The notes beneath the pieces are model-generated. The model did not search any database and was not told the DNA's origin. It saw nothing but the letters and a program-made list of their open reading frames with translations. A program made the translations under genes and the position numbers. A stretch of 63,738 nucleotides of DNA, counting the filler, from Pelomyxa schiedti (taxonomy: Eukaryota; Protista; Evosea), in assembly GCA_020536535.1 (NCBI GenBank). It is 6 parts of 6 records of this genome, joined end to end, with 100 filler letters (N's around TTAATTAATTAA, not from the genome) between each part and the next. Parts side by side here need not be neighbours in the genome. Positions count along the whole stretch, not along the records: positions 1 to 17,406 come from JAHLWZ010001129.1; 5 more parts are not named here. One strand, 5' to 3'. This document shows, in pieces, positions 1-17,406 of the stretch. Numbering within the stretch: position 1 is the first letter of the stretch; every line of letters begins with the position of its first letter.

Positions 1-3000
1 AGTCCAAGCGGAAATGGAACTGTTGTTCAGACTCCGCCTTTGACTTTGGTGTCTTCCTCACCGATTTTGTTGTCAGTTGATTCTACGCATTCCAGCGCGG
101 CATCATCGCCAAGTGATTCTGCGAAAATGGGGAAGAATGAGGAAAGACTGAACGATGTAGGTGATGAACAGCCAGTGTTCATGGGCTTGGTTCCTCCACT
201 TCCTTTTTCTTTGAGTGAGCACTGTTTGCCACCTGATTTGCCTGAGCACTTTCTCCCTACTTCTCCATCGCCTCAGGAGTTACCTTTTGACGTTCTCCCT
301 CCTTCACCGGCACCGTCTCCTGTTCCATCGGCACGCTCTCCAACACCTTCTGCTGCCTTACTATGTAGTATGTCTGGGGGAAATAAATTTGCCCAGAGTA
401 CTTCATTGAGTGTATGCTTGCACATTTAATGAAAACAACTCATTGCCACTCAATCACTTGCATCACCATTTGCTGTATCGCAGCTTTAAGTCACTTAAAA
501 ACAGGAAGCAGAACAACGTGCCCTCATTTCGAAAGTTGCATCCCTCTTCAACCCGGTTTGTTCTTATTTTTTTTATACTTCTATCGTAACTGTACTCCCA
601 GGCTGATCCCAGAATACCACATTGCCAAAAAATAGCAAGAAATTGGCTATGTAGACTACACAGAGGTACTTTTCCCCTTCTTGATGTAGCACTCAGAGAA
701 GTATAGCGAGGAGGAATTTCCCTCCTAGAAAACCACCTTTTGTGAAACTTCTTTTTGCGGAAAGAACCCTGGTACGAAAATTACAGTTGCTTGTCCTACA
801 TTATGTTACACCCATCGAAAAGGGCCTGGCCAGTGTAATTTCCTTCATGCCGATATTTCCAGCTCACTTAAACAAGGAAACTATAACAAAAGCTGATATA
901 ACTAATCTATGTGGGGAAGCAAGACAATTTCTCAATCTGCACACAAAAATTCTTAGTAATTTCGAGGCTGTAAGGCACTTTTCTCTGCTTTCTTAAGTTG
1001 AACGCATGTAGCTTGTGGATAACTGGCCCTCTGTTGATGGGGTAGGCAATATTTTTGTGCAACTTGCTTTGAACAATGAGTTGCATGTGTATGGTATATG
1101 TGTCTTTTCCTTACGTGCTCGATCTCATTCTGAATAAAGGATCCTATGTTGCACACTCTCTTGTTCATGCTGATACACTTGAAAGACTTGAAAATACAGA
1201 TTCAGTATTCGCAGGCTGGCTCCAAGAGGTTTGAACATCATAATTATTCAACTTCTTATGGCACTAGACATATCTCAACTTGGGGGAAGATCTCTCTCTC
1301 AAGGAGTTACTTGAAGTTCCACTTAGTCACATACACTTATATGCTTCTATTCTCCAAGAGCTTATTGACGCCACACCGACTCATAGTCTTGATCTTTCAA
1401 CTCTTTATGAGGCAGAGTCGTATCTCCAGAAAGCTTGCACTGTGGGTACTTAATGTCTGTGCTGAGTTTAATTCTTTCTTGGCTTTTGTATTTTTTATTT
1501 TCTTGTTGTTACTGCGCAATGTCTTATCTTATCCCAATGTAGGTTGTTGCGGATGCAAAGACCAGAGCTATTGCTGTGAAAAATCTCTTTGAGGCAGTCT
1601 ACAAGTTTGGTGGCTACACATCAGTATGACTTTTATGTGCTTTTTAATTATAATTACCTCTGTTTAGAGCTTCCCTGCTGACCCAAAGCGGCAGTTGGTA
1701 GGGGACTTTGACTTCACCTCCCCCAAAAACAAGACACCATGGTAAGACAAGATTCTTCACATCATTAGTAACCTTCTCCAGGAAGGCATTTGTTTTCTCT
1801 GACCAGATCATCCTTGCATCACCTAAAAAAGATAAAAAAAGATGTGATACTTTTAAGCTGGAAGTAGCAATGAAATTCACCGATATTATGGATGTTGTGG
1901 AGGGACCTGGTGACATCTTGCTTATTTTGTCATTAGTTCTGTCATCCTACTGACTTATACAGATAGTCTATCTTTTACAGTCAGTTATATGAAAAAGCTG
2001 AAGCAGATATTCAAACTTGACTCGCCCACAAAAAAGAATATTGTTTACTCTACCATTCGCAGCAAGTTCGAAAAAATAAATGTATGTGCTTCTTGTAAAT
2101 AGCATCTCTGACTTCTTCCAGTGCAAAAGAAATGGTTTTCTTCATACTTTCTCTTACACTCAATTGACATGCATCAGTGTTTGGTGCCACTCTCAGCGAA
2201 CTTATCCATAGTGAGGACCGAGATGATATTGGCTATCCACTAGTACTTGAGCGTGGTCTTCAATTCCTCGAATCAAGTATCTGAAAGTCATTTTGTCTAG
2301 CTGTCAACACTCTCCTCTCTTTCTATCTTCTGGAGGACAGGAATTACCGTTGTTGGCCTATTCCGAGTTCCTGGACACAGTACAGATATAACAAGACTCC
2401 GAAAGCTTGTGCAAGGTTTCTCCTCTCAGACACTTCTTGTAACTTAATCTAAACCCAGATGATATAAACTTCAAGTTCTCTACAACAGATGATCCCTTTT
2501 CTGTGGGCTCCCTTGTGAAACTCTATTTACGAGAAATGGCTGAGCCACTGTTTCCATTCAATTGTTATGACTCTCTCCTTGCACTGCATGGCGTTGGTTA
2601 GCAAAATACTCTTTATGCTCTCTTATACGACTTCCCTTTTTCGCTTTGTTTTCTCACCCCACACAGCTCAGGCAGAGTTCCTTGAAGAAATGGGGATGGT
2701 ACTCCAAACGCTACCTGATCACCACAAAAAGACTCTGTTATACCTATCTGACTTTATGGTTAGAGTTTTTGCACACACGGCCACAAACAAAATGACCCGT
2801 ATGTGTTGTTATCTCCAAAAAGCAAACATTTCTACTTCACCCCCTTTTAAATTGTCTTACAATAATGTAAGCTCGGGCAATTGCTATTGTGATTGGACCC
2901 AATTTGTTACGCCCAGCCGTCGAAACCATGGACTCTGCTCTGGACATTCCCAAAGTCAATGGAATTGTAGCAAAGTACTTTGAAAATTATCCAGCACTCA

Positions 3001-3020
3001 GGCCTCTCCTGGATGAATAG
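1..3020 (+). CDS. Multi-exon RhoGEF (DH)-PH-RhoGAP protein, 5' end outside window
   Basis: Pro-rich N-terminus. DH helix 'KLLFAERTLVRKLQLLVLHYVTPIEKGL' (742). RhoGAP motifs 'VFGATLSEL..YPLVLERGLQFL', 'GLFRVPG', 'DPFSVGSLVKLYLREMAEPLF', 'TNKMT..AIVIGPNLLRP'. Stop TAG 3018-3020. Exons separated by short introns. Confidence 0.8.
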
Positions 3021-3120
3021 CCATTCACATTGGAAAAGCCCACTTACGGTTCTTTTGTTGTTTGTGTAATAAGTGCCGAGGCGGCATTGAGTGAAAAAAT
3101 TTTATGGAATCTTTGTTTTT

Positions 3121-6100
3121 TCAGCTTTTTAGTTCTTCTGCCATTAGGGCAACAAGCCTATTTCCTGCAGCGTTGTGCCTAAGAATGTTCTGAATTGTTG
3201 TTGCAACGTGCTTTGCTGCTGTCAAAGGATCCATACCCTAAAAATTGTAAAAAAGCAAAGGTTGTCTACTATCAAGAGTCGTACCTGGGCATAGATGTTG
3301 GAAACAACCGTGTATTCAAACTTCGGACCAGGATCGTCATTCCGATTCAACGCAACATCTGTGGAATATCAATAAAGGATAGAAAGTAAGAAAATTGCTC
3401 ACATGCTGACATACTCCTACTGGTTTCTAAAGAACCACCAGGCCGCTCACCAACAAGAATGCAAGTAATTCGGGAACCCACATATTTGCACACCTCTTCC
3501 ACTAATTTCACTCGTCCATAACGAACAACAATATGCGGAGCACAGAGGGAAATTCCAGCTGTATTGAGGTGGTTTTCAAGAAGGGGTAGGAACACTGGAA
3601 CATTGTAGTGTATAGCTTCGGCACTCAAGCCATCAGCAATCTTGTATTGGTCGGTGTTACAAATTTTTATCATGAAATGAATGGGATGACAAACAATTAT
3701 CTGCACATCTAGGTTCGACTTCAGAAGTTGTTGCTTAGAGCGTTCTGTGAGCTGAGCTCCCAATTTTGGATTTCTTAAATGAGTTTCTTTTGAAGTGGCA
3801 ATGGTCTCCAAGTGACAGAAGTGTGGTGGCGGAAACTTATTCATGTCCAGTTCGACCAAAACAGCGTCACGTGCAACTGTTCAGAGCTTTGTGAGTGTCT
3901 TTATCAAGGGGAAAAAAGGAAATTACGGGCTTCATTTGCTCTCACTTCAAGAGCAACGTCATTGGCAGGTCGAGGCCCGGAAGACTTAAAAAAAATAAGC
4001 CACTCGTCAAAAAAAAATCAAAAAAACCTAACCTGAAAACCATAGTTTTGTGGAAGATGAGCCTGCAGTGCAGTGAATTCTTCTTCTGACTTGCAGAATA
4101 TAAGAGGATTTCCCCAGTTTGGCCCTCGTTCTACTTCTCCATTCTGTTCTATTTGAGGCAAGAAATGGTTCAGTTCCGTGTAACCTCATTTAGCCGAAAT
4201 ATTCCTTTGTTTTCAGCCCAGGAACAAAATTCTGAAGAGTAACTCAGACTAAGTTGCCTAAACAGGTAGAAAAAACCTGGGGCAGGCTTAAGGCCATATG
4301 TCTCGCGTAAGGTTTGGTTATCATGCCCAGAAACATTAAAGTATGCCAGCATCCTATCACACCCTAGAAACTGCATTCATGTTAGTGGAAAACTTAAAAT
4401 ATTTTGGCTCACCACATCCATGTAAAAAGTTACACCAGCAGCAGTAAGGAGTTGGACAGCTATTTGTTGGCCCTCCCTGTCTGTTGCACAGTGGATAGTG
4501 AATCCTGGGTCCATACCCATTGGTAACCCCATGACTTTTCCGCAAAACAAGTCTTGAAGACAGGAAATCTATTTAAATCAGTTCAAACAGTGTGGTCAGG
4601 GTCGTACTTACCATTAATTGATGGTTATTGGCATGGGTCTCTGGCCCAATGAAACCAGTGACACTATTAACCATAAAAGGAGAGTATCGCCTTGCAAGGC
4701 CATAGGCAAGTGCCTCACATGTCATCATATCAATTCCATTATTGGCACCATAGCTGGAGGTGAGAGACTTTGTTAGTAAGCGTCAAAACTCGATCCCCGC
4801 AATTTATTTTGTAGGGGAGTTTTCTCACCTCACCTGACACAACTCCCTTGTCCAGTCTCAAAGTATAAAAAGTGTCTTGCTTCATTGGCAAGAGGGCCTT
4901 TTTCCTGCATCACCTCAAATGCTTGATCTAAAGGCTTATTAAGGACTAGTGTCAGGCTGGAGAGTAAGGTACCCACCAAGTAGTGCAACTGAGATCCCAA
5001 ATTCGTCTTGAATTGTTTTGTCAGTCCCTGCCAAACTTTGAAATAGGATCTCAACGGGATATCCTTGCTCAAGGCATTTCAATTGGGTTTTTATATGTCC
5101 AAGGGTGCAAATTTGAGTGGGGACTTGGAATTCCCGCCTGATGGAATCCAAAGTGAGGAGAATCTTGCCAACTCCTTCCACTGTGTCAATTGCCGGGTTA
5201 ACACCAAACATACAGTCCCCCATCCTGGAAAAGGATAGTTAGATTGTGCTAGCGGTGACAAAGGCAATACCCCATTGACAATCCAGTGTATGTAAGCAAT
5301 TTTATACCGTCTAAGTCATCGACAGGGTGATTTGGCTGTAATCTAGATGACAGGGTACCTGGTATCCCTATGCACGTTCGAGCCTGAGATTACAATAAAA
5401 ACGAACAATTTTAACAGATGAGGCAGTTACTTTGGTTGGACTTTTCAGTTTCTTGGAGACAAAAATTAATTCATGAATGTCCATCAATTTGGCAAGAGCT
5501 GCCACGTGAACCCCTGTTAGAGCCTTTCCAATTCTCAATATCTATCTTGGTTTTAAGGGAGAGCACTGTGTTACAAAGAAGTCACCTCCATTCCTGAACT
5601 CTTGAGAAAGTGATCTTTGAGGTTTCCCAGTGTCAAGTGTTTTATGGATTCATAAGTCGCTAGGTCAACATCGTAGTTCACCCGCATTACATCATCTATC
5701 TCCCTGTAAAGAGGGAATTACTTTCGACTGGAATAAGGTAAATAGAAGGCAAACCCATTGACATCCAGTAACGGGGTTTCATATATATGCTGCACAGTAA
5801 GATGTGAAAGGACTGACCGAGCTGCTTCTCTAAGTCTCTCATCTCTTACAGGAAACCTATTTATTACCAGTGATATTAAACGAAAAAAAGGGTGCATCCA
5901 AGGGAGAAAGAAAAAAAAAAAAGATTGAAGCTTTCACCTTGGCAGAGTGTCACCTTGTTTTGGTAAGTCAGCAGCAGTAAGTACCTCCTTCAGGTCCACA
6001 AACGAATACTCTCTTCCCTTCACACTTGACAGTTACCACAAGTTAACAGCCCCCCCACAGCCAAAAAAGAAACAGCCAAAACGTCAGTCACTCAACCAAC

Positions 6101-6469
6101 CAGTTGTGTCACACAGTAGTAGTGGCCGCCCCCCACGCCGCCGACGTCCGCCGCGACAGCCCCCCCCGACTCCCTGGGCCGCCCCTGCCCCAATGGCTCC
6201 TCCCCCGCCCGTGTCTGCGTCGGAGCCTGCGCCTGCACCTGCGAATGGGGCGGGGGCGAGGGCGGCGGCACTGGGATGTCCCGCAGCGGGGTCAGGGTGC
6301 GCCGGGGGCCCCCGGTCCCCGAACTGCACCTGCATGTTGTTGCGCTGCTGCTGGCCCCGTCGTTTGCCGCGAGTGTGGCAGCAGTAGCCCGCTCTGCTGC
6401 CGCCTCCTCCTCCATTGTTGTGGTCGTGCTCCCCGTTGCTGTTGCCGTTCCCCTGCTGGCCGTTGACAT
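3121..6469 (-). CDS. eutBC: Spliced ethanolamine ammonia-lyase, EutB (large)-EutC (small) subunit fusion
   Basis: EutB motifs 'YSFVDLKEVLTAADLPKQGD', 'GTLSSRLQPNHPVDDLDG', 'GDCMFGVNPA', 'FQSLAGT', 'LYFETGQGS', 'GFIGPETH', 'QDLFCGKVMGLPMG', 'SGHDNQTLRETYGLKPAP'. These are followed without a stop by EutC motifs 'ARDAV', 'LRNPKLGAQL', 'IADGLSAEA', 'VRYGRV', 'VGERPG', 'VVSNIY', ending ..LMAEELKS* at 3121. The first exon (ATG 6469) is inferred. Confidence 0.9.
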
Positions 6470-6535
6470 TTGCGACAATAATAATAAAAAACCAAACGGC
6501 GCCACGCACTCTGTTGAATCACTTTTCTTTATCCT

Positions 6536-7672
6536 TCAGCAGACGCGACGTAATGCACACTCTGTTAGCATTTTGAAGACAGGTATCCCAGAGAAATGTA
6601 TGACTTCAAAGTAGTGTGCCTTCGTGTCTTTCGGTTCCAAAATCACCAGGTCCTCTGCAAAAAACATGTTGGTGCCTTGCTCTTCTCTGCGGATGCAAAA
6701 CACGTGATCTCGTGCATGAACGCCATGCACCTCAACGCGGTGGTCACTGAACCAGGTGCACACGTAGTATGGGCCGCCAACTAGCCGTGTTTGGTTAGGA
6801 ACTACACCAGGGCGTGCTGTTCCTCGAGGCAATGGTGTCCTCTGGCCAGTTGTCAGGCACAACAGACCACCATTTTCAGACAGAAGCGCGTAGGCCATTC
6901 CCTTCCAGCACACAAGGCCGTCAACGTGCTCGTCGCCGTGGAGTACATCAGTAATTGGCCAAGGGCTCCCAATCAACCTCTGGTGTGCCAAGCTGGATTC
7001 CAGGTCGATCACCATCACACCCACCCCCTCTTCCTGTGCGACGACCAGCGAGCCGCTCTCTCTCCCCAGCGCCGCCGTGTGCACCTTCCACGGCAGGGCA
7101 ATGCCCTGCGCGGTCCTCACCTTCCCAGACTCGATCCCATCAAAGTTCCAGAGTGCCATCGTTGTCCCTTGGATGACCGCAGCCCAGCGCCTGTCGCTGT
7201 AGCACCTGGCATCTGCGTTGGGAATCTCCCAGTTGTCGCGGTCTGTGGCTTCTCTGCCGGTGTTGGTGTCAATCACACACAGCCGTGGGGGTCTCTTCAT
7301 GACTGTCACTCTGAGTACCAGTGCGTATCTTGTGTCGGCGGCGGCGGCGGGACCCACCCACCCTTGAAAAGCGAGGGCGATGTTGCAGCCAAGGTTGACA
7401 ATTGTGGGATGGCCGACAAGGCCGAGCGTCGGCGACACGCGGAACTTGACCCAGTGGTCGTTGTTCCAGCGGTATTTCCGGTCTTTGAGCTCCAAGACTA
7501 CGTTATGGGAAGGGAACACGATCCACTCACGGCCAATGACCGTCAACAACGAGGCCGAGAGGGACGACACCGGGCTGTGGCGACCACACCGTCCCACAAT
7601 GACGCCCACGCCGAGGGCGATGAACTGGCAGCGGGCGTAGGTTTGGTCCTTGATTGTTAGGGTCTGACGAGG
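6536..7672 (-). CDS. Intronless 'RCG..SP-box' family protein with beta-rich C-terminal domain (copy 1); start codon unresolved
   Basis: Open frame begins 'QTYARCQFIALGVGVIVGRCGRHSPVSSLSASLLTVIGREWIV', then 'FRVSPTLGLV' and a beta-rich body. The nearest ATG (7688) is one base out of frame. Confidence 0.6.
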   Translation of the reverse strand, partial: PRQTLTIKDQTYARCQFIALGVGVIVGRCGRHSPVSSLSASLLTVIGREWIVFPSHNVVLELKDRKYRWNNDHWVKFRVSPTLGLVGHPTIVNLGCNIALAFQGWVGPAAAADTRYALVLRVTVMKRPPRLCVIDTNTGREATDRDNWEIPNADARCYSDRRWAAVIQGTTMALWNFDGIESGKVRTAQGIALPWKVHTAALGRESGSLVVAQEEGVGVMVIDLESSLAHQRLIGSPWPITDVLHGDEHVDGLVCWKGMAYALLSENGGLLCLTTGQRTPLPRGTARPGVVPNQTRLVGGPYYVCTWFSDHRVEVHGVHARDHVFCIRREEQGTNMFFAEDLVILEPKDTKAHYFEVIHFSGIPVFKMLTECALRRVC

Positions 7673-7849
7673 AACTCGTCTTGATCATCTCGTTTTTTCG
7701 ACCGTGGGGGAGGTGGCGAGTAAGTGTGTGGTGTGGAGAGTTCTCAGTGTGGCTCCAGGTTTGTTTTTAGTGTCGAGGCAAGGAATTCCATGGGGGTCTA
7801 CCCTGGAATGATGAAGAGGAAAACAAGACTCAATCATTCGCAGGTTGAA

Positions 7850-10422
7850 ATGAGTGGAAGCAGCCACAACCCGAGTTCACCGGCACCACTGACGGGAAAT
7901 GCTCTCGTTGATTGCGTGGGAGCCATTGTGGCCGCCCTGGTCAATGCTTACGACACTGGTGACATCCCACTATTCTAAACAAAACTGTCTCTTCTTCTTT
8001 TTTTTTTTCCCCCATTAATTCTCCCCAAGGCGACGGGGATACGATGTCACGAAAGGGAGTGAGTAAGTTGAAATCTGCACTGGCAAATAAATTCGGATTG
8101 CCCACTGCTCCAAAGACTGTGGATGTCATTGCTGCCATTCCTGAAGTTCGTTTTGACAAATATGCTATGATAAACTTAGAGAGTAAGAGATAATAAATAC
8201 CTGTACTACAATGCTTTTTTGGGGAGGGAAATATAAAGCCAAAAACCAAAATCAACCACTGAATTCCTTAGGCCTACAAAGCTGGGTTGGTTCCCATTCT
8301 CAAAACCAAGCCAGTAAGAACTGCATCAGGAATTGTGGCTGTGGCCGTAATGTGCAAACCTCATCGGTGTCCACACATAGGTTTCATACCTTTTCTTGCA
8401 TAAAGAATGAATTCTCACTGTGTGCAAGTGCGAACTGGAATGGTGTGTGTATACTGCCCTGGAGGTCCCGACTCCGATTTTGAGTACAGTTCCCAGTCTT
8501 ACACTGGGTATGAGCCCACAAGTATGCGAGCAATACGTGCTCGATACGACCCCTTCTTACAAGCCAAGAACAGGCTTGATCAACTTAAGGTACCCCTACA
8601 TATCTGAAATGGGTACAGGATAATAATCACTGTATTTTTATTATTTTATTTGTGTAGCGTCTGGGACATGCAGTAGACAAAGTGGAGTACATTGTAATGG
8701 GCGGCACCTTTATGGCCTTGTCACAGGAGTATAGGTTTTTATCTGGTAAGATCTTGCTTGTCTGATCTCCAACCAGAGATAGCTTTATAATTAGCCTCCA
8801 TGATGCATTGAGTGGGCACATTTCTACAACTGTGGAAGAAGCTGTAAGATTTAGTGAGCAATCAGTTGTAAAGGTGAGTGTGGTTGGGTTTTTTGGTACT
8901 AACAAAGTTTTCCAGTGTGTTGGACTGACAATAGAAACTCGGCCAGATTGGTGTTCAAACAATCTTGTAAGAGATATGCTTCGATATGGTTGCACTAGAC
9001 TGGAAATTGGTGTTCAAGTATGTGAACCACGGATACTAAGCTGCACACTAAAAGCCTATGTACATTAGAGTGTGTATGACGATGTCCTGTTGGCAATGAA
9101 CCGTGGTCATACTGTTGCGACAGTAGTGGATTGCTTCCATAGATTACGTGATGCTGGATTCAAAATTGTGGCCCATATGATGCCAAACTTACCAGCTATG
9201 AATGAAGAAAGAGACATGTAGTTTCCTAGTCATCAACATCTACTTTCCCTGAGAATCCATAGAAATACCTTTGCCGAGCTTTTTGAAAACCCTGCTTACA
9301 GACCTGATGGTTGGTAGTTCCTTTCTGAAGGAAGCATTCTTAGAGCCCTTAGGAATGAAAGTCTATCCTTGCTTAGTCATGAGAGGAACTCAATTATTTG
9401 AAATGGCCAAGGTTGTCTTTCCTAGAAGAATTCATGCAAGGAAGGAGCTGATCTTATATAGACAGGTCAATACATTGGCTATTCTACCAGTACATTAGTT
9501 GATGTTCTTGCCAAAGCTCTTTGCCTTGTCCCCCCTTGGACGAGATTGTATACTTTCACTGTTTATTTATCGACTTGTTAATTTGTTGTTCAGGTATAGA
9601 ATTCAGCGAGATATTCCCATACCAGTAAGACTGGTTTTTTTTTTCCCCCTTCATTTTCCAACATTCAAATAGTTGGTGAGCAGTGGTGCTGAATCTGGAA
9701 ACCTGAGACAGTTGGTGTTTGCCAGAATGCAAGAAAATGGAGCCAAATGCCGTGATGTAAGGTATTTTTATGGACTTTTTTCGGGAAAAAACCTTGAGTT
9801 TCACTAAGTGAACCCTCAGAACTCGCGAGGTTGGTATACAGAGTATCCACCATAAGATTAATCCAAATGAAGTTGAGCTGATAAGGAGAGATTATTGCGC
9901 CTCGGAAGGGTATTTTTTACCTATTCCCTAATGTCATGCCATCTTACAGTAAACAGTTGGGAGACATTCCTGTCTTATGAAGATGTGCAACAAGGTAAAA
10001 AAAAAAAAAAAAAACATTTCCACGTTATTTATTTAACCAACGATTCCCAAGATATTTTGATTGGTATGCTGCGACTACGTAAACCCACACCATCAGCAGT
10101 GTGTTCCGAAATGCAACCCCCAAACAGCACATCTATAATTCGGGAGCTACATGTTTACGGGTCTGTGGTACCAATTCACAGCAGAGACCCCCGACAGTTC
10201 CAGGTACTTATGAAGTCCTTTTTTTCCCCCAACACTCAATTCTAACACAAAAAAAAGCATCAAGGCTACGGCACCCTTCTCATGGAAGAGGCAGAAAGAA
10301 TAGCACGAGAAGAGCACAAATCCACCAAGATACTCGTAATAAGCGGCGTTGGAACACGCCATTACTACATGAAGTTTGGCTTCAAACATGACGGACCATA
10401 TATGTCCAAACCTCTTGTATAA
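7850..10422 (+). CDS. ELP3: Elongator complex protein 3 (radical SAM + GNAT tRNA acetyltransferase), multi-exon
   Basis: '[20 protein letters not shown]', '[37 protein letters not shown]', '[10 protein letters not shown]', '[11 protein letters not shown]', 'CTRLEIGVQ', '[12 protein letters not shown]', '[17 protein letters not shown]', 'GPYMSKPLV*'. Confidence 0.97.
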
Positions 10423-10536
10423 GGGAAAAAAAGAAGCCTTATGATAATGAGTTCTATGTCACTTTTTAAAAATAGTTAAAAATTTTACAGTGATGTTGCT
10501 GCCAGTTGTGCTTGGCACAATGGCGTGGTGCCTTAT

Positions 10537-12926
10537 TCACAAGAGCTGAGGGAGAGGTAGAGTGGTAGTGCCGAGGGACAATGCATCATCTATTGTCACA
10601 AGTATCATGGGTGTCAGGGGGGATCCCCAACAGTCCGGTGGTTCTTGGCATAGTATTACAGTGTGTGACAGAAGTAACAGAGTGGGACAAGGAACCCCTC
10701 CTACTGTTACAGACAGCTTCTCCTTAAAGCCCCAGCCAAGAACGGCAAAGAAATCACGAGGTGAGTGGAGTCTTTTGACTGCAAATACAAAGTGATCTGG
10801 GAAAGTTGGGTGAGTTTGGGTGATTTTGATGAGATGCTTGAGACCTCCTTTCCCAGTCACCTTTGTCTGAGTTTTTTCACTTAGGATGGAGGAGCCAATA
10901 TCCTTATTTCCCTGTCCGGCTATCATCTTATTAGAAAGGGTGAGGGGGTAGGGGCCTTACGTAGTCCTGTGACAATTTTAAGTAAGGTATTATTCATCTT
11001 CACAGATGTAATAAGATCAGATGATCCTTCAGCAGTGTACAAATCTGTGCGTACGACTTGAGTTTGACTAGAAAAGTAGGTAAGAGGCATACATCGCGCA
11101 GCCAAGTATTGCAAACTAGTATTCAATATTATCATTTGATTAAGAAGGAGTGAATTGGATATTTCATGGTTATCTGTAATTGCCGAACGAAAAAAAAAGG
11201 TTAGAAACGAGAACATAACAAGAGAGAATAAGGAATCAGCAGAAACCGGAAATATCCAAGTGCTGTAGAACCTCCGCTCTCTGGAGCACTTCAGTTAGTG
11301 GCTGAAGGGCCTTGGGGGAGAGTTTTGTGCCTAGTCATTACATATGAGAAAGGATAGTATTGAAAAGTGTAATACATTCTAAGTTCACTCTCCTGAGAAC
11401 CTCATTTGAAGCAATAATTTTAGAGAGTGCTGTGGCCGCCTCGGTTCCAATTTCATTTCCTTGGAAACTTTACCGAAAAGATTAATTGAAAGGAGGGGTA
11501 CGAGCAAAATCGATTGCAATGAGTGTTTTGTTTGATTGTAAAACAGAGAACAATTGTTGTGATGCCTGTGCACTACTACCTTCAGTTAAGTCAGTGCCTA
11601 TTCATGATGTGGAGTGGCGTACCAACATCACTCATTACCAGTTCCCATATGCTCTGATTTGATGCCATCAAGTTCCCTATTTCTGCAACTCCGATTTCCC
11701 CAATGTCAGGATTTCCTGTTTTTTTAAAATTGTTGTTGTGTTAAAAAAAAAAAACCAATAGGTGAGATAAAAAAAATACAATGAACTACCAACCACACAA
11801 TGCCAAATTCAGAAGTGTTACATTCTTGGCAAGTGATCTCCCAACTTGCATTGCACCCGTTGCGCTGATACCAGTTCCTTAGTTCATTAAAGAAGGAAAA
11901 AAGGAGAGCAAAATAGTTGAATTTGCATACCACTAATATCCAGATATATTAGAGTGTTTTGAGTTTCCAAGGCTGCCATAATTGCACTAATGCCTTCATC
12001 TCCAATAGCCACGTTCCCTGCATTGGGATTAAGTATTTGTTTGCGAATACCCATGCCATACAGCCGATATCCAGTTGAAGGAGACGGGTATTGTTTAGAG
12101 TATGCGCTAAAGCTACCGCCCCAGCAGTATCAATAACATTTCCTGATACAATTGAGTGCAGGGTGAAGAATAATTGCATACCTCTGAGAATAAGCCGCAT
12201 AAGAGATGTATTGGTTTCGAGCATATTTGCAAGGGCAATTGCACCTTGAGATTTAATTCCAGTGTCTGTGTTTCAAATGAGGGAAGGGTAATAAATAGAC
12301 TCTCTCACTGGAAAGGACAAGACTGTGCAGAGTGGGTATGGACAGTGCTTTGGCTAGCATGGCTCCCTCATCTGATCCCGTACCAATCCACGGATTATCT
12401 TGATAATGTCAAATACTATTTAGTACAAAGGGTCAGTGGCATACAACTTAAATCGAGATATTGCAATCGGGTGTGCTCCTGTAACGCTAGCATTAAACGT
12501 TCCGCACTTTCCCAACCTATGGCATTCTCTACATGTAATATTAAAACGATTATAATCAGGACTCGAAGACTGCACCTTGTATTGCCAAGTGCTCCAGTGA
12601 AGTATTGACATGAAACCCCGTACACAATAACGATACGCCCTGATCCCCAAGGTAATTCCCTAGGTGAGTTTTAGCGAATTTGGCAGAGGGAAAACCATGC
12701 CAAATAGAAAAAAAGAGAGAGAGGGAGAAAAAAAAACCACAGTGGTGGATAGCAACAAGTACAGACCAATAAGAACGAGTTTACGCAATGGGCAGGATCT
12801 CCTGGACAGCGACAATGCGACGCCCGCCGCGGACATGCCGTCGACCGTGTCGCAACACGTGATGTCCGTGCTCACACTGGCCATCGACGCCAGCTCCCGT
12901 GACGCCCCTGTCACACGCCCAGACAT
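10537..12926 (-). CDS. RNI-like leucine-rich repeat protein with C-terminal IPT/TIG-like domain, multi-exon
   Basis: About one LRR per exon: 'NAIGWESAERLMLALQEHTRLQYLDLS', 'LETNTSLMRLILRG', 'NVIDTAGAVALAHTLNNTRLLQLDIG', 'LQRAEVLQHLDIS'. The last exon 'LGWGFKEKLSVTVGGVPC..ILCQEPP' matches the TIG pattern G.GF...V.VGG..C...I.C..P. Confidence 0.75.
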
Positions 12927-13452
12927 CGTCGTGCGCACTCACCAAGTTGGTTCTCCTAGTTTGGTTTCGTCGACCGGCGCGTTTTCAAGAAGCGAACAAG
13001 AAAATCTCGTTGTTGGAAGCTCTGGCAAATGACAATGGCCTTGTGATTGTCACCCACATGGAAGATCTGCACTGTCAGTTTGAGTCAAAGTCTCAAGCCT
13101 CCCGCAAGCACGTGGCTTAAATCATTTTACGTTTTGTAGTCTAATGTTGATCGGAGAGTCTGCAGGCTTTCTTCTCAGAGATTGATGCAAATTCACCTGG
13201 TAGGTAGCCTTGTCGCCCACATTGCCGTCTCTGAGTGGGGGTTCTCCAAGATCCCAGATTCCCGCTACGATTAAAAAAAAAATTAAAAAGGTTACATGTT
13301 AACATGACAGACAGCAGGGAAAAGGACGAACGAAGCATAACATATAAACAAACCAACAACCCGAACACACAACCGAGATCTATCGTTGCACAGTGACTGT
13401 GGTCACAAAGGCGTGCGGTCACCACTGCGCCAAGAGCAAGGAGTTCACCGCA

Positions 13453-14247
13453 ATGCTTCTTGGCGACGACGACAACGAGGAGGGGGCTTCTCAACACAAC
13501 GATGGCGCTCAAGATCTGCATGCGCAGCAAACGACAACTACAACCACGACGTCGGCGGCTGCTGCGTCGCCGAAACTCGCAACACCAACTTCCACGACTA
13601 CTACAACCACGTCGTCGGCGTCTGTCTCGGCGGTGACCATCAGCAACAATATCGAGAGCCCCAAGGAACTCGACGCTGGCAGTCTCAACAGTTCAGAACA
13701 AGGTAATTATGATCTACACTAACAGGCACACAGTAAATTGGTTTAGTTAATACGGACTCCCACGTCGCAGTTCCTGCTATCGCCGCTGGGACGGCATCCA
13801 CCACATCTGACGGATCAGCAATGTTGATTACGGTTACTATTAACTCTGAGGCCCGAGGTGCTATCGATTCTGACAATGATGGTGAACTTGGGAAGTGCGG
13901 TCGCACGCTGGCACATGTAATATGGGAATACGACAGCGTCCACAAGTACAGGGTCTGGCTTAAAATCAAAAGTCCCTACGTAGATTTTCATGGTGAGCAA
14001 ATGGCAACTAAGGCACACTTCTTTTTCTTTCTTACTAATGAACCCAAGAATGATAATACCACAATTCTTAATGTACACAGGTGACTTCAAACTTATACAC
14101 CAAAGCTGGAAAACCTGTCAAATTGCAGAAGACCCAGTTCCGCTTCAGCCGTTTTTCCTGGATCGGCGTTTTCCACGTCACGCACCTCACAACCCTACCA
14201 CATGTCATGACATTCCATGTCGAGCTGTGGAACGAGGAACAAGATGA
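13453..14247 (+). CDS. Hypothetical protein, 3 probable exons, Thr/Ser-rich N-terminus
   Basis: ATG 13453 'MLLGDDDNEEG..', GT-AG bounded ORF pieces 13453-13702, ~13771-13992 and ~14081-14247. No recognisable domain. Confidence 0.4.
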
Positions 14248-14659
14248 CTGAAACTGTTGTGTCTGGGAAAAAAAGCGGGCCCCTCACTCTTTTCAAAGAA
14301 TTTTTTTAGTCACCCCCTTTGTTTCCTTAACTGACACGGATGAGCACCAACACTAGGTTGGGTTAGTTGTTTGGGGCTGCGAGGGTACCCATTGGATATC
14401 AAGAACAGCTCAGTTTTCAAACACCAACAACACAGAAAACCAATCACCGGTGTGGCGTTTGGCTGGTTGTAGAGGGTTGTGTGTTGGGAAACGTGGCTCC
14501 GCTGGTGTAAGAGAGGCTTGTTGCTGTTGTGTGTTGTACCGTCGGTGCCAATCGATCCTCAAGCTCAATGTAACTCCACGAGTGGTCTGAAGGGGGGTGG
14601 GTAGGAGAACAGTCTGTGATGCTCTGACTCTGTGTGTGTTTTCAGGCGGCCCATATATG

Positions 14660-17400
14660 AATACTATTTAAAAAATGAGCACGGAGCTTCTCACCTTTTG
14701 GTGGTTTACATTCGGGGAACTTCTTGCTTTCTTTTTAGGTGAATATCTTCACACTTCACAGTGAATGCAGATTGTCCATCACTGGCTCATTGCAAAGACA
14801 GCAACTTTCCAACACCAAGGCACAACAGCAAGAATTATGCCGATAATACAAGCATACAACGAACTGTTGTGGAGGTTGAGAAGGCATACAATCCTCCAAG
14901 CCATGGTCACAGGGCTATTCAGCAGAGTCTTTCCAATCAAGATGTCAATGAATGTATGAAGTTGTGTCGGCAGTATTCTCTGGAAAATAGGAAAACTGTG
15001 AAGTGTAAAGATATTCACGAACAGAAAAACGCTTCAGTTTTCTTCGTATACCACTGAAGTGATTCTCCAATGCCAGAGTTGACAATGGCTTCAAATCATA
15101 TAGGACAATTGAGTACTTAGGCTCCAGAATTTTGGCAAGTCTTTCAAACCCATCAATTGTGATTCTTAATTGTTTCCACACAGCAGTTGTGCAGAATTTC
15201 TGCTGGGTTACTTTGAGGTTATCCTGGGAAACTTTGGTAATTGTCAACCCCTCAAAATAAAAATTTGCGGAATTCACAAATGCGCTCTTTTACAGGATCA
15301 TGAGTCCTCACAAAAAGGTTGTGCAGATTACTCATGTGACTGAAATACTCTATCACTAAGAAAGACTCAGAGGCACAGGCTTTTTCCTGAAAGAGGTATA
15401 AAATCTTGTATATCAGCTCAATCTCATGTGAGGCTTGGCGGTCACTAGGGAAAAGGATATCATAAGATGTACACTTTTCTGCTTCTTTGTTTGCTGCTAT
15501 AACAATATGCAAAGACTGCATTGTAAAAACCTCTCCCTTCTCTCCTTTTCTGATGAAGTAATTTAGCAAGTAATTCCGGAAGAGCTTCTCCATGTGAGAA
15601 ACATCATAGACGAATTCTAATGGTTGCTGCAATGCTTGCACCAGTGGGTCCATTAGATTGTCACAGGCTCCCTTATTCCACCCATCACTAGAGACCCACA
15701 GTGTTGGTATATCAGCCACTTTTAGTGCTTGCAATATCTGTAGTAAAACTTGCCTTATTTTTCTATTACTCATTCCACAAATAGGGATTTCGAAAATGCA
15801 TTCTTGTGCAGTGCCATTCCACGCAACCCAGGCAACCTACAGTATCTCTGAGGCAAGGCTAATCTCTGAACTGCTATCACTGTGTGGAGCCTCTGATGCA
15901 AAGGTATCTTCATTCACCGATTGAAAGTTGCTTATTTTTTCAATAGGGATACCTACCTGTGTAGACCCAATAAGCATCTGTAATGACGTATCCCTCCCTA
16001 GCCCTTTCCGCACTTCAACACCATCAAAGCTGATTCCACCGGGAAGAACTACACCCTTCACTTGTTTGAGGTGAGCTATCCTTTCCCATATTGCTGCATC
16101 ACTTGTACTGAAGTTCGGTGGTGTTATTCTTTTTTGTAGGCTACTGACTGAAGGTAGAGGAAGGCCCATTTTCTCTTTTGATGGTGGCAGGTGACCCCTA
16201 CTTCCTCCTGTTACATATCCGCGAATGAGTTCGTATCCAGTCTTTCCGCATATTGTATAAAGAACCTGACCCCAATTGATCATCTCTGCTGTATACCGGA
16301 TGTGTCTTCTGTCTTTCCGCTGCAGGTACTCAAGTAAAGACTTAACTAGTATCTCACAAAAGTTCAGGGACCCACGTTGGTACTCCAAATTCAGCACAGC
16401 AAGTAAGTCATGCACAAGACACTCTTTTGAAGTTCTATTTGCTAAGACTAGCTGGGTATGTTCAAGTTCCATTGTCAATGCATTACCTTTTTTTTTTGTA
16501 GTGGTTGCTTTTCCGATTCTAAAAGACTTGCCTTCGTTGCCAATCATGCCGTCAATAGCTTGTGTGTTCCTATCAGTACATGCCGTTTATTTTTACTTAC
16601 GTTAGTAATCATTGTGCCGGCCAACGTGAGTAAGATCTGTCTGTGCACTTATAAACTCGCCAATAGGGTTGGGGAACCACGATGTCAATGTGTCATCTAC
16701 AAGCACTGGATCAATATTTGGATACGTTTCGACGGTGGGTTGTACAACACCCACCCCCAGTATGGCATTCCCACTGCTGCACACCCTTCCTGTTATTATT
16801 TAGTTTTCTAAACTAAACTCTTGTAATTCTATTCAGGGTAGTGTCGGCACTCTCAGAAAGCCATTGTTGAATTTCATTTAATTTCTTTTGGTGCCTCTGC
16901 AGCGGCAATGTGGAGAATAAGTCATAACAGAAGAAAAAGGTACAAACAACTTGGGGAAGGTCTCAAGATCATTCCACACTGAAGTGTACAAGTCTGGTAC
17001 AGACCACGTTAATGTAAAAGCACTGGTATGAGCAGTAAAAGTGGAAGTAATAGGGATTCGTAGCCTTAAATGAGTCAATGAAGACTTAAAAGTATACAGA
17101 AATTAAACAATTGTAATTCTATTCAGGGCAGAGTATTATGAAGCAGCGGTTGAATGATGAACAACTTGTTTAGAATCACAAGATTGGTTGGTTGGGAATA
17201 TCCATTCCCCACTTTAGGCAAAATTGGGCTACGGACTCCACAGTGGACGCTGGGGGCAAACATTTTTTGGCGGTTGTCCTCCGGAGACTTCCCAGAAAAA
17301 CTTACAAAACGGGAAGGTCGGTGTGTGTTTTTTTTTCTTCTTTGCCGGATAGGTACCTCTTTCACCACCTTCCTGCGGGTAGTGACGTGGGCCGTTGTGG
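14660..17400 (-). mobile_element. Decayed P-element/THAP9-superfamily DNA transposon (transposase pseudogene)
   Basis: Motifs in order: 'RYTAEMINWG..LY..GKTGYELIR', 'LPLPSVSSL', 'ISFDGVEVRKGL', 'VSSDG', 'FVYDVSHMEKLFRNYLL', 'FPSDRQ', 'STLALENHFSGIRRK' (D..D..E triad and D(2)H motif). In-frame TAG at 15837, frameshift near 15260, further stops downstream. Termini not identified, so boundaries are approximate. Confidence 0.8.
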
Positions 17401-17406
17401 CGACAA

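Follow-up and report, generated by a model that had tools for sequence, protein, structure and literature searches.

A predicted single-chain ethanolamine ammonia-lyase of bacterial ancestry, encoded by an intron-rich gene of the amoeba Pelomyxa schiedti

How does a vitamin B12-dependent enzyme of an otherwise bacterial family come to be encoded as one spliced chain in an amoeba, and is it still the enzyme that its motifs suggest? This question is raised by a locus in a Pelomyxa schiedti DNA stretch of 63,738 nucleotides (the window; assembly GCA_020536535.1), whose first part, positions 1 to 17,406, comes from the scaffold JAHLWZ010001129.1 (C1129), and in which matches to EutB and EutC, the two subunits of ethanolamine ammonia-lyase, follow each other on the minus strand between positions 6469 and 3121. 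The analysis described here points to a nuclear gene that probably encodes a single-chain, adenosylcobalamin (AdoCbl)-dependent ethanolamine ammonia-lyase, derived from a subfamily of bacterial enzymes that already had both domains on one chain. Gene structure, membership of the family and subfamily, conservation of the substrate-binding residues and the eukaryotic context were established directly; as judged from its sequence the gene looks intact, and from this we infer an active enzyme.

The curated model consists of a single frame of 817 amino acids (aa) distributed over 18 exons; the 17 introns between them are all of the canonical GT-AG type and 41-83 nt long (mean 53), and the start ATG lies at 6469-6467 and the stop TGA at 3123-3121, both matching the coordinates of the original prediction. 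Junctions were chosen after enumeration of all frame-keeping GT...AG intervals between each pair of adjacent open segments, and a canonical solution that maintains the frame was available at 17 of the 17. A purpose-written spliced protein-to-genome aligner, guided by the Sorangium protein P0012 and independent of prior annotation, returned identical coordinates for exons 3-15 and agreed on exon 2 save for its 5' end, and tblastn with EutB and EutC of E. coli K-12 identified the same minus-strand segments as the Pfam scans. The open reading frames (ORFs) of the exons match positions 101-426 of the EutB profile PF06751 in order, and one of them matches the EutC profile PF05985 with an expectation value (E) of 2.2e-26; with the deposited protein of this locus (P0001, see below) the values are 7.6e-118 for EutB and 5.5e-49 for EutC, the latter over profile positions 2-234 of 235, and exon 7 matches 3abo_A with E 4.5e-16. 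The order along the chain is EutB, a conserved linker and EutC, and exons 12-15 cross the junction without a stop, with GPNWGNP lying within exon 13, YGFQ at its end, GPRPAND in exon 14, and a split codon joining exon 14 to ARDAV in exon 15. This linker is kept in both paralogues and in the bacterial single-chain enzymes. The claim that EutB and EutC share one spliced reading path is borne out by the collinear Pfam matches, the GT-AG pairs at all junctions and the bacterial-guided alignment, and the coordinates, the linker and the motifs SRLQPN (residue 273) and YFETGQGS (residue 402) that had been quoted are all present in the curated model; the join given as -VARDAV has to be corrected to ...NEA-L-ARDAV.

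The start codon (6469, with an ATG at 6415 as the alternative) and the exon 1/2 junction are the least certain parts of the predicted lyase model. For the junction, preference was given to 6101|6017, at which a conserved Gly is retained and which coincides with the intron position of the paralogue C899; after this paralogue comparison it replaced the earlier choice, 6097|6010, although both could be used. After exon 3, the GTTTGC donor common to C899 was preferred to an 18-nt intron that had also been considered. In exon 1, ~57 low-complexity residues precede the bacterial-type N-terminal motif TPLRDIPVPPP (aa 60), and a 41-residue Gly/Ala/Gln-rich insert (aa 74-114; 6171-6297, minus strand), missing from both paralogues and from all bacterial sequences, lies between this motif and the first EutB strand. 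An extension of ~120 low-complexity residues had been suggested; in the curated model it is really composed of the ~57 residues before the motif plus the insert of ~41. The frame of exon 1 is backed by the homology of motif and hairpin to Sorangium P0012, to P0151 and to the paralogue P0177. Inside the insert, a 69-nt in-frame GT...AG interval was observed, which could be an unrecognised intron.

The identity of the enzyme was addressed by aligning the model with E. coli EutB and EutC and with nine bacterial single-chain proteins. The residues taken to bind the substrate in E. coli EutB (structure 3ABO) are Arg160, Gln162, Asn193, Glu287 and Asp362, and the aligned positions are identical at five of five (R274, Q276, N307, E404, D479); the equivalents of E. 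coli Phe329, Met392 and Leu402 are likewise kept. Among the columns invariant in 38 bacterial sequences 78 of 79 are retained, the lone exception falling in an alignment gap, as are 165 of the 178 columns invariant within the single-chain subfamily. The active-site motifs, which had been called intact, are indeed so, both SRLQPN and YFETGQGS being present together with the five substrate-binding residues. Evidence on the fold comes from the intact deposited paralogue P0177 (locus C801) rather than from the 817-aa chain of the window: its AlphaFold model has a mean predicted local distance difference test score (pLDDT) of 87 and superimposes on 3abo_A with a template-modelling (TM) score of 0.94 and a root-mean-square deviation of 2.0 Å, and on 3abo_B/D with TM 0.79-0.81, with its low-complexity N- and C-terminal tails predicted to be disordered. 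As compared to the two-subunit EutB/EutC of E. coli and Salmonella (3ABO, EC 4.3.1.7), both Pfam domains and the five substrate-binding residues are conserved, with an identity of ~38% for EutB and ~30% for EutC. However, the canonical enzyme is made of two chains and the Pelomyxa lyase of one, the linker stands in place of the first ~80 residues of E. coli EutC, and neither shell genes nor eutA were seen for the Pelomyxa lyase, unlike in canonical systems. The missing ~80 residues include the microcompartment-targeting peptide.

The origin of the fused architecture is revealed by bacterial relatives. A word-index search with the enzyme part of P0001 yielded 1,088 matches at E <= 1e-20 among 8,000 scored candidates, and one with P0177 yielded 7,780 at E <= 1e-30, again among 8,000. 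The best bacterial matches, 708-795 aa long and 50-57% identical to the query, contain both Pfam domains and come from sources named as Pseudomonas, Hyphomicrobium, Methylocystis, Desulfobulbaceae, Desulfospira, Planctomycetaceae, Pirellulaceae, Neisseria and Sorangium. They make up a single-chain subfamily of ~720-790 aa, which differs from canonical EutB in its linker, in its N-terminal motif and in signatures including GFIGPETH. With members such as WP_438040763.1 of Sorangium sp. So ce128 (P0012), P0200 of Pseudomonas sp. Fl4BN1, P0189 of Desulfospira joergensenii and further examples from Hyphomicrobium, Methylocystis and Planctomycetaceae, the Pelomyxa protein shares the domain order, the linker RGPNWGNP...YGF..AGPRPAN, the N-terminal L-x-x-I-x-V-P-x-P motif and the signatures GFIGPETH, LQD.F.GK and DRMLAYF, at 51-54% identity across the whole enzyme part. 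The original prediction of a fusion domesticated in a eukaryote is not supported in this respect: thousands of bacteria have the same one-chain arrangement, with this linker and N-terminal motif, and comparison of the architectures indicates that the fusion did not arise in the eukaryote but is bacterial in origin and predates the transfer. The bacterial genes differ from the Pelomyxa gene in being intronless and following eutA, whereas the latter has 17 introns and an unrelated ORF upstream, and their products have neither the low-complexity extension at the N-terminus nor the 41-aa insert. In six of the six bacterial contexts opened, eutA directly precedes the single-chain gene, sometimes together with a permease, EutH or aldehyde dehydrogenase gene.

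Three lyase loci are present in P. schiedti, namely C1129 (in the window), C899, for which a model of 18 exons was built in this analysis, and C801, represented by the deposited P0177, whose 18 exons were confirmed. The contig C801 (139,094 bp) is a perfect inverted duplicate, in which position x corresponds to 139083-x, the 7.9 kb compared being 100% identical; it is most likely a multiple-displacement amplification chimera, and because of the palindrome its two EutBC copies are counted as one locus. In a maximum likelihood tree of 43 rows (LG+C20 with posterior mean site frequencies, PMSF), the three Pelomyxa genes fall within the single-chain subfamily, whose separation from canonical-type sequences has 100/100 support; C1129 pairs with C899 (100/99), the attachment of C801 to this pair is weak (77/32), and the sampled bacteria form the sister group of the Pelomyxa genes (73/89). 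The proposed phylogenetic check therefore places the Pelomyxa genes firmly within the single-chain clade and resolves no donor lineage: none can be named, because they branch outside all sampled bacterial members. One transfer or two may have taken place. The bacterial ancestry that had been proposed is upheld, the family being otherwise bacterial in every search.

The intron record is informative, since C1129 and C899 have 14-15 of 17 intron positions in common, in the same phase, and C801 shares 0 of 17 with either. Given that the bacterial ancestor was intronless and that the positions in the C801 lineage are all different, at least ~34 introns were gained after the transfer, which makes the intron gain heavy, and by the same comparison the C801 lineage is placed as splitting off before the gain of any surviving intron. 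Nonsynonymous divergence (dN) among the paralogues is 0.33-0.45 (C1129 versus C899, 0.33), and synonymous divergence (dS) is saturated, for which reason no dN/dS ratio is given. Between C1129 and C899 the exons are conserved at the protein level and the introns cannot be aligned, which together with the dN of 0.33 and the saturated dS argues for long purifying selection. An old transfer with long residence, as suggested originally, is in line with the 17 introns, the three old paralogues, the saturated dS and the host-like GC content.

The locus had already been annotated. The P. schiedti assembly (52.4 Mb in 5337 scaffolds, ~82-85% BUSCO-complete) derives from single cells whose DNA had undergone whole-genome amplification, its annotation having been produced with Augustus, PASA and EVM (PMC8887013). 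A search of protein representatives with exon 7 retrieved a 100% identical protein of 1144 aa, KAH3732714.1 (P0001), which is named 'ethanolamine ammonia-lyase [Pelomyxa schiedti]' in GenBank, and mapping it to the window suggests that its model is probably wrong in three places. First, an upstream ORF belonging to a multicopy family is spliced onto the enzyme through a canonical intron. Second, 6171-6509 is taken in another frame than in the curated model; several frames are open in the stretch of 64-72% GC around exon 1, and only the curated one yields TPLRDIPVPPP and a hairpin strand that can be aligned with bacterial N-termini and that of the C801 paralogue. Third, 25 residues encoded at 4836-4910 (minus strand) are missing, YFETGQGS included, and neither GT-AG nor any other standard splice pair produces the junction over them. 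In the curated model this segment belongs to exon 8, which is conserved at the protein level in both paralogues and was recovered by the bacterial-guided spliced alignment. The omission could stem from an artefact of annotation or of reverse transcription, or reflect a rare isoform.

Several observations weigh against an active ethanolamine ammonia-lyase as modelled here. The predicted start ATG lies just 66 nt past the stop of the upstream ORF, and the N-terminal extension is equally provisional. The deposited model, said to be transcript-refined, omits a catalytic segment, and a mis-spliced or alternative mRNA may therefore exist. The curated NCBIfam cut-offs are not reached: among the sequences scored (the enzyme part of P0001, P0177 and two bacterial single-chain proteins), EutB attains 384-446 bits as compared to 554 (NF011649) and EutC 138-157 bits as compared to 230 (NF003971 equivalog), by which the whole single-chain subfamily is placed outside the curated equivalog. 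To our knowledge, no member of this subfamily has been assayed, and no biochemical characterisation of it was found in the literature. EutA was not found in the genome with either PF06277 or the Sorangium EutA protein as query, and is called not found rather than absent because the assembly is incomplete, and eutA adjoins the single-chain gene in every bacterial context inspected. MMACHC was not detected either, in a search that lacked a positive control and is hence uninformative.

The alternative that best survives is that of a genuine AdoCbl radical lyase whose physiological substrate is not ethanolamine but another amino alcohol or an N-substituted ethanolamine, the subfamily being a functional paralogue of EutBC. 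Besides the low NCBIfam scores, it is favoured by the position of E. coli Asp362, which in the 33 aligned bacterial subfamily members is occupied by Ala (31) or Ser (2), and at which 112 Ala but not a single bacterial Asp were tallied in a motif count; for these two reasons, the substrate of the subfamily is not to be assumed. Genomic contexts contribute as well, since on a Desulfospira-type contig the single-chain gene follows an OpuAC-type ATP-binding cassette (ABC) importer, and in Pseudomonas sp. Fl4BN1 it shares an operon with canonical eutB-eutC, which argues against redundancy. However, the window gene and C801 have the canonical Asp (C899 has Ala), the other substrate-binding residues are kept, and other bacterial contexts are ethanolamine-like, with EutH, an amino-acid permease, aldehyde dehydrogenase and EutA. 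A substrate other than ethanolamine is on balance unlikely for the Pelomyxa enzyme. The Pseudomonas operon itself (GCA_009908285.1, 1521-10478) consists of genes for aldehyde dehydrogenase, EutH, EutA, single-chain EutBC, canonical EutB and EutC, and the coexistence of both lyase types suggests that they have different roles.

A decaying or silent relic, retained by chance or with this copy inactive and one other paralogue functional, is an improbable explanation. The failure to find EutA, the missing catalytic segment in the deposited model and the errors that an amplified single-cell genome may contain would be compatible with it. Yet the spliced frame of 817 codons is unbroken with canonical splice sites throughout, nearly all invariant and subfamily-invariant columns are maintained, and it is the exons, not the introns, that have been conserved relative to a paralogue at saturated dS.

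That the GenBank model is correct, with a Pelomyxa-specific domain of ~360 aa fused ahead of EutBC in a protein of 1144 aa, is very improbable, even though this model connects both parts via a canonical intron and transcript data fed the annotation pipeline. The upstream ORF (6539-7609, minus strand) is intronless, has 357 codons and a GC content of 52-61%, ends with its own TGA at 6536-6538 and gave no Pfam match. Its family has >120 matches across the P. schiedti genome, many of them in tandem (e.g. on C1002, C1073, C1419 and C621), and these relatives are stand-alone intronless frames of ~375-430 codons, with matches extending to the end of the ORF. The TGA is in frame with lyase exon 1, 23 codons ahead of the ATG, which could be taken as support for the fusion; as such an arrangement occurs by chance in one case out of three, it was given no weight. 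Moreover, the frame used for 6171-6509 in the deposited model has neither the N-terminal motif nor the hairpin strand common to bacteria and P0177, and no such leading domain occurs in either of the other paralogues. Correcting the deposited model has practical value, because as it stands it would hide the catalytic motif.

Bacterial contamination or an assembly chimera, for which the polyxenic culture, the whole-genome-amplified DNA and the artificial palindrome of another EutBC-bearing contig (C801) might be invoked, is not tenable and deserves next to no credence, because the coding sequence is broken by 17 spliceosomal-type introns and lies between eukaryotic genes on one 17.4-kb scaffold, with a GC content at third codon positions (GC3) of 44%, similar to its surroundings, and a best bacterial identity of just ~54%. 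The lyase is a nuclear gene of P. schiedti. On one side, an intron-containing RhoGAP-domain gene on the other strand ends ~100 bp beyond the lyase stop, and on the other side lies the Pelomyxa-specific multicopy ORF, and the placement between eukaryotic genes given in the original prediction is thereby confirmed. Elsewhere on the scaffold, an ORF at 10537-10926 (minus strand) has a weak match to the IPT/TIG domain (E 4.7e-5), and long ORFs at 15252-16547 (minus strand) gave no family match. The exons are listed in Table 1.

Table 1. Exons of the curated lyase model, with window coordinates and encoded features
Feature	Coordinates	Strand	Residues (aa)	Content
Exon 1	6101..6469	-	1-123	ATG, low-complexity stretch, N-terminal motif, 41-aa insert, first EutB N-terminal hairpin strand; GC 72%
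Exon 2	5938..6017	-	124-150	Pfam EutB domain begins (YSFVDL, aa 127)
Exon 3	5755..5856	-	150-184	EutB; weak GTTTGC donor, same junction in C899
Exon 4	5586..5703	-	184-223	EutB
Exon 5	5431..5541	-	224-260	EutB
Exon 6	5271..5383	-	261-298	EutB; SRLQPN, Arg274/Gln276 = E. coli R160/Q162
Exon 7	4977..5224	-	298-381	EutB; GVNPAID, Asn307 = N193
Exon 8	4834..4927	-	381-412	EutB; YFETGQGS, Glu404 = E287; GT-AG both sides; mostly lacking in the GenBank model
Exon 9	4612..4753	-	412-459	EutB; subfamily signature GFIGPETH
Exon 10	4413..4568	-	460-511	EutB; MGMDPGF, Asp479 = D362
Exon 11	4277..4370	-	512-543	EutB C-terminal part
Exon 12	4185..4231	-	543-558	EutB end
Exon 13	4033..4143	-	559-595	Conserved linker GPNWGNP ... 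YGFQ
Exon 14	3927..3984	-	596-615	EutC core start (GPRPAND)
Exon 15	3695..3876	-	615-675	EutC
Exon 16	3403..3640	-	676-755	EutC (ADGLSAEA, VGERPGG)
Exon 17	3285..3358	-	755-779	EutC
Exon 18	3121..3237	-	780-817	EutC C-terminus (AAGNRL), followed by TGA 3123-3121

Under the preferred reading of a transferred single-chain lyase, an already-fused bacterial gene would have entered the amoeba, where it acquired 17 spliceosomal introns together with a disordered extension at its N-terminus and became one of three old paralogues. If it works as the E. coli enzyme does, the single chain, an EutB TIM barrel followed by the linker and by EutC as the cobalamin-side domain, would oligomerise and bind AdoCbl at the interface of EutB and EutC; homolytic cleavage of the Co-C bond would generate a 5'-deoxyadenosyl radical that abstracts hydrogen from C1 of ethanolamine, and after migration of the amino group acetaldehyde and ammonia would be released. 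Because the chain lacks the N-terminus by which E. coli EutC is targeted to microcompartments, the reaction is proposed to proceed without one. The amoeba's own PduO/MMAB-type adenosyltransferase could convert imported B12 to AdoCbl, and acetaldehyde could pass to the aldehyde and alcohol dehydrogenases of the amoeba, while a supply of B12 from endosymbionts or prey and of ethanolamine from digested phospholipid, such as the prey phosphatidylethanolamine of the original prediction, is a conjecture.

Several components of such a pathway were identified. A gene for a PduO/MMAB-type ATP:cob(I)alamin adenosyltransferase with at least two exons is located at C850:45441-46024 (minus strand), and as far as the published P. 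schiedti metabolic table is searchable it is not listed there. The B12-dependent methionine synthase MetH has been reported in P. schiedti (PMC8887013), and aldehyde dehydrogenases are listed for the amoeba in published gene lists. Among the endosymbionts, genes for cobalamin synthesis and a corrinoid adenosyltransferase are listed for Candidatus (Ca.) Syntrophus pelomyxae, and CbiB for Ca. Methanoregula pelomyxae, in the supplements of the consortium paper. The AdoCbl handling that the gene was said to imply is supported by this intron-bearing adenosyltransferase gene and by the cobalamin-synthesis genes listed for the two endosymbionts. The helpers expected alongside it fared otherwise, since EutA was not found and the sole MeaB match adjoins a mutase-like gene on another contig. 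There, segments resembling methylmalonyl-CoA mutase and a MeaB-like G protein lie on the same strand (C939:1287-1697 and 3490-3657, minus strand) with introns between them; they could be parts of an IcmF-like fused AdoCbl mutase, and hence of a further adenosylcobalamin enzyme, and no B12-binding domain was detected on contig C939. Taken as a whole, a microcompartment-free and possibly EutA-free pathway with three diverged isoenzymes, supplied with B12 by the methanogen and Syntrophus endosymbionts, is a tentative proposal, more doubtful than the identity of the lyase itself.

As for other eukaryotes, two word-index searches of one database gave, besides Pelomyxa, only bacterial names among the best 120 matches. 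The short EutB-like proteins P0002, P0006, P0008 and P0013, which lie on long contigs and resembled exon fragments, proved to be encoded by genes with frameshifts, located near eutA, mraZ and his genes on contigs of bacterial metagenomes. P0005, on an AT-rich contig next to ELMO-domain ORFs, was rejected as a eukaryotic copy, being intronless, truncated and overlapping eutA, and it most likely stems from the assembly of a bacterial symbiont. An AT-rich contig of 6.4 kb and 31% GC (JBEBWU010000113.1 of GCA_040391985.1, 207-6080) encodes a BtuF-like binding protein, EutA and a single-chain-type EutB truncated directly behind 'MYF', beyond which ~700 bp of AT-rich spacer lead to ELMO-domain ORFs; the contig probably carries a decaying operon of an intracellular bacterium with eukaryote-like genes, transfer into a eukaryote being the alternative.

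Lateral acquisition of genes for anaerobic metabolism by Archamoebae is a familiar theme. A full-text literature search retrieved no paper on ethanolamine ammonia-lyase in any eukaryote or amoeba, and the enzyme is unmentioned in both Pelomyxa papers (main texts and text supplements) and in the main text of the Mastigamoeba genome paper. Known beforehand was the gene name in GenBank; added here are the corrected model, the intron record and an uncharacterised bacterial subfamily. In a survey of 160 eukaryotic genomes published in 2009, the B12 enzymes were limited to MetH, methylmalonyl-CoA mutase and class II ribonucleotide reductase (PMC2667541). Like these three, the Pelomyxa lyase would need externally made cobalamin, and P. 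schiedti also has MetH and a mutase-like gene, but it belongs to another enzyme family and would catalyse another reaction.

The source subfamily is very large, paired with eutA in the contexts inspected and altered at a substrate-binding position. Because their ancestor had no introns, the Pelomyxa paralogues allow intron gains to be dated and counted directly, and if the independent entry of at least 34 introns holds true, this family is a clean natural record of intron gain. If the product is a working ethanolamine ammonia-lyase, it would constitute a fourth family of B12-dependent enzymes in eukaryotes, B12 dependence would have a wider meaning for anaerobic protists with B12-making symbionts, and, should its B12 be supplied by the endosymbionts, a concrete vitamin-for-substrate link would be provided within the Pelomyxa consortium.

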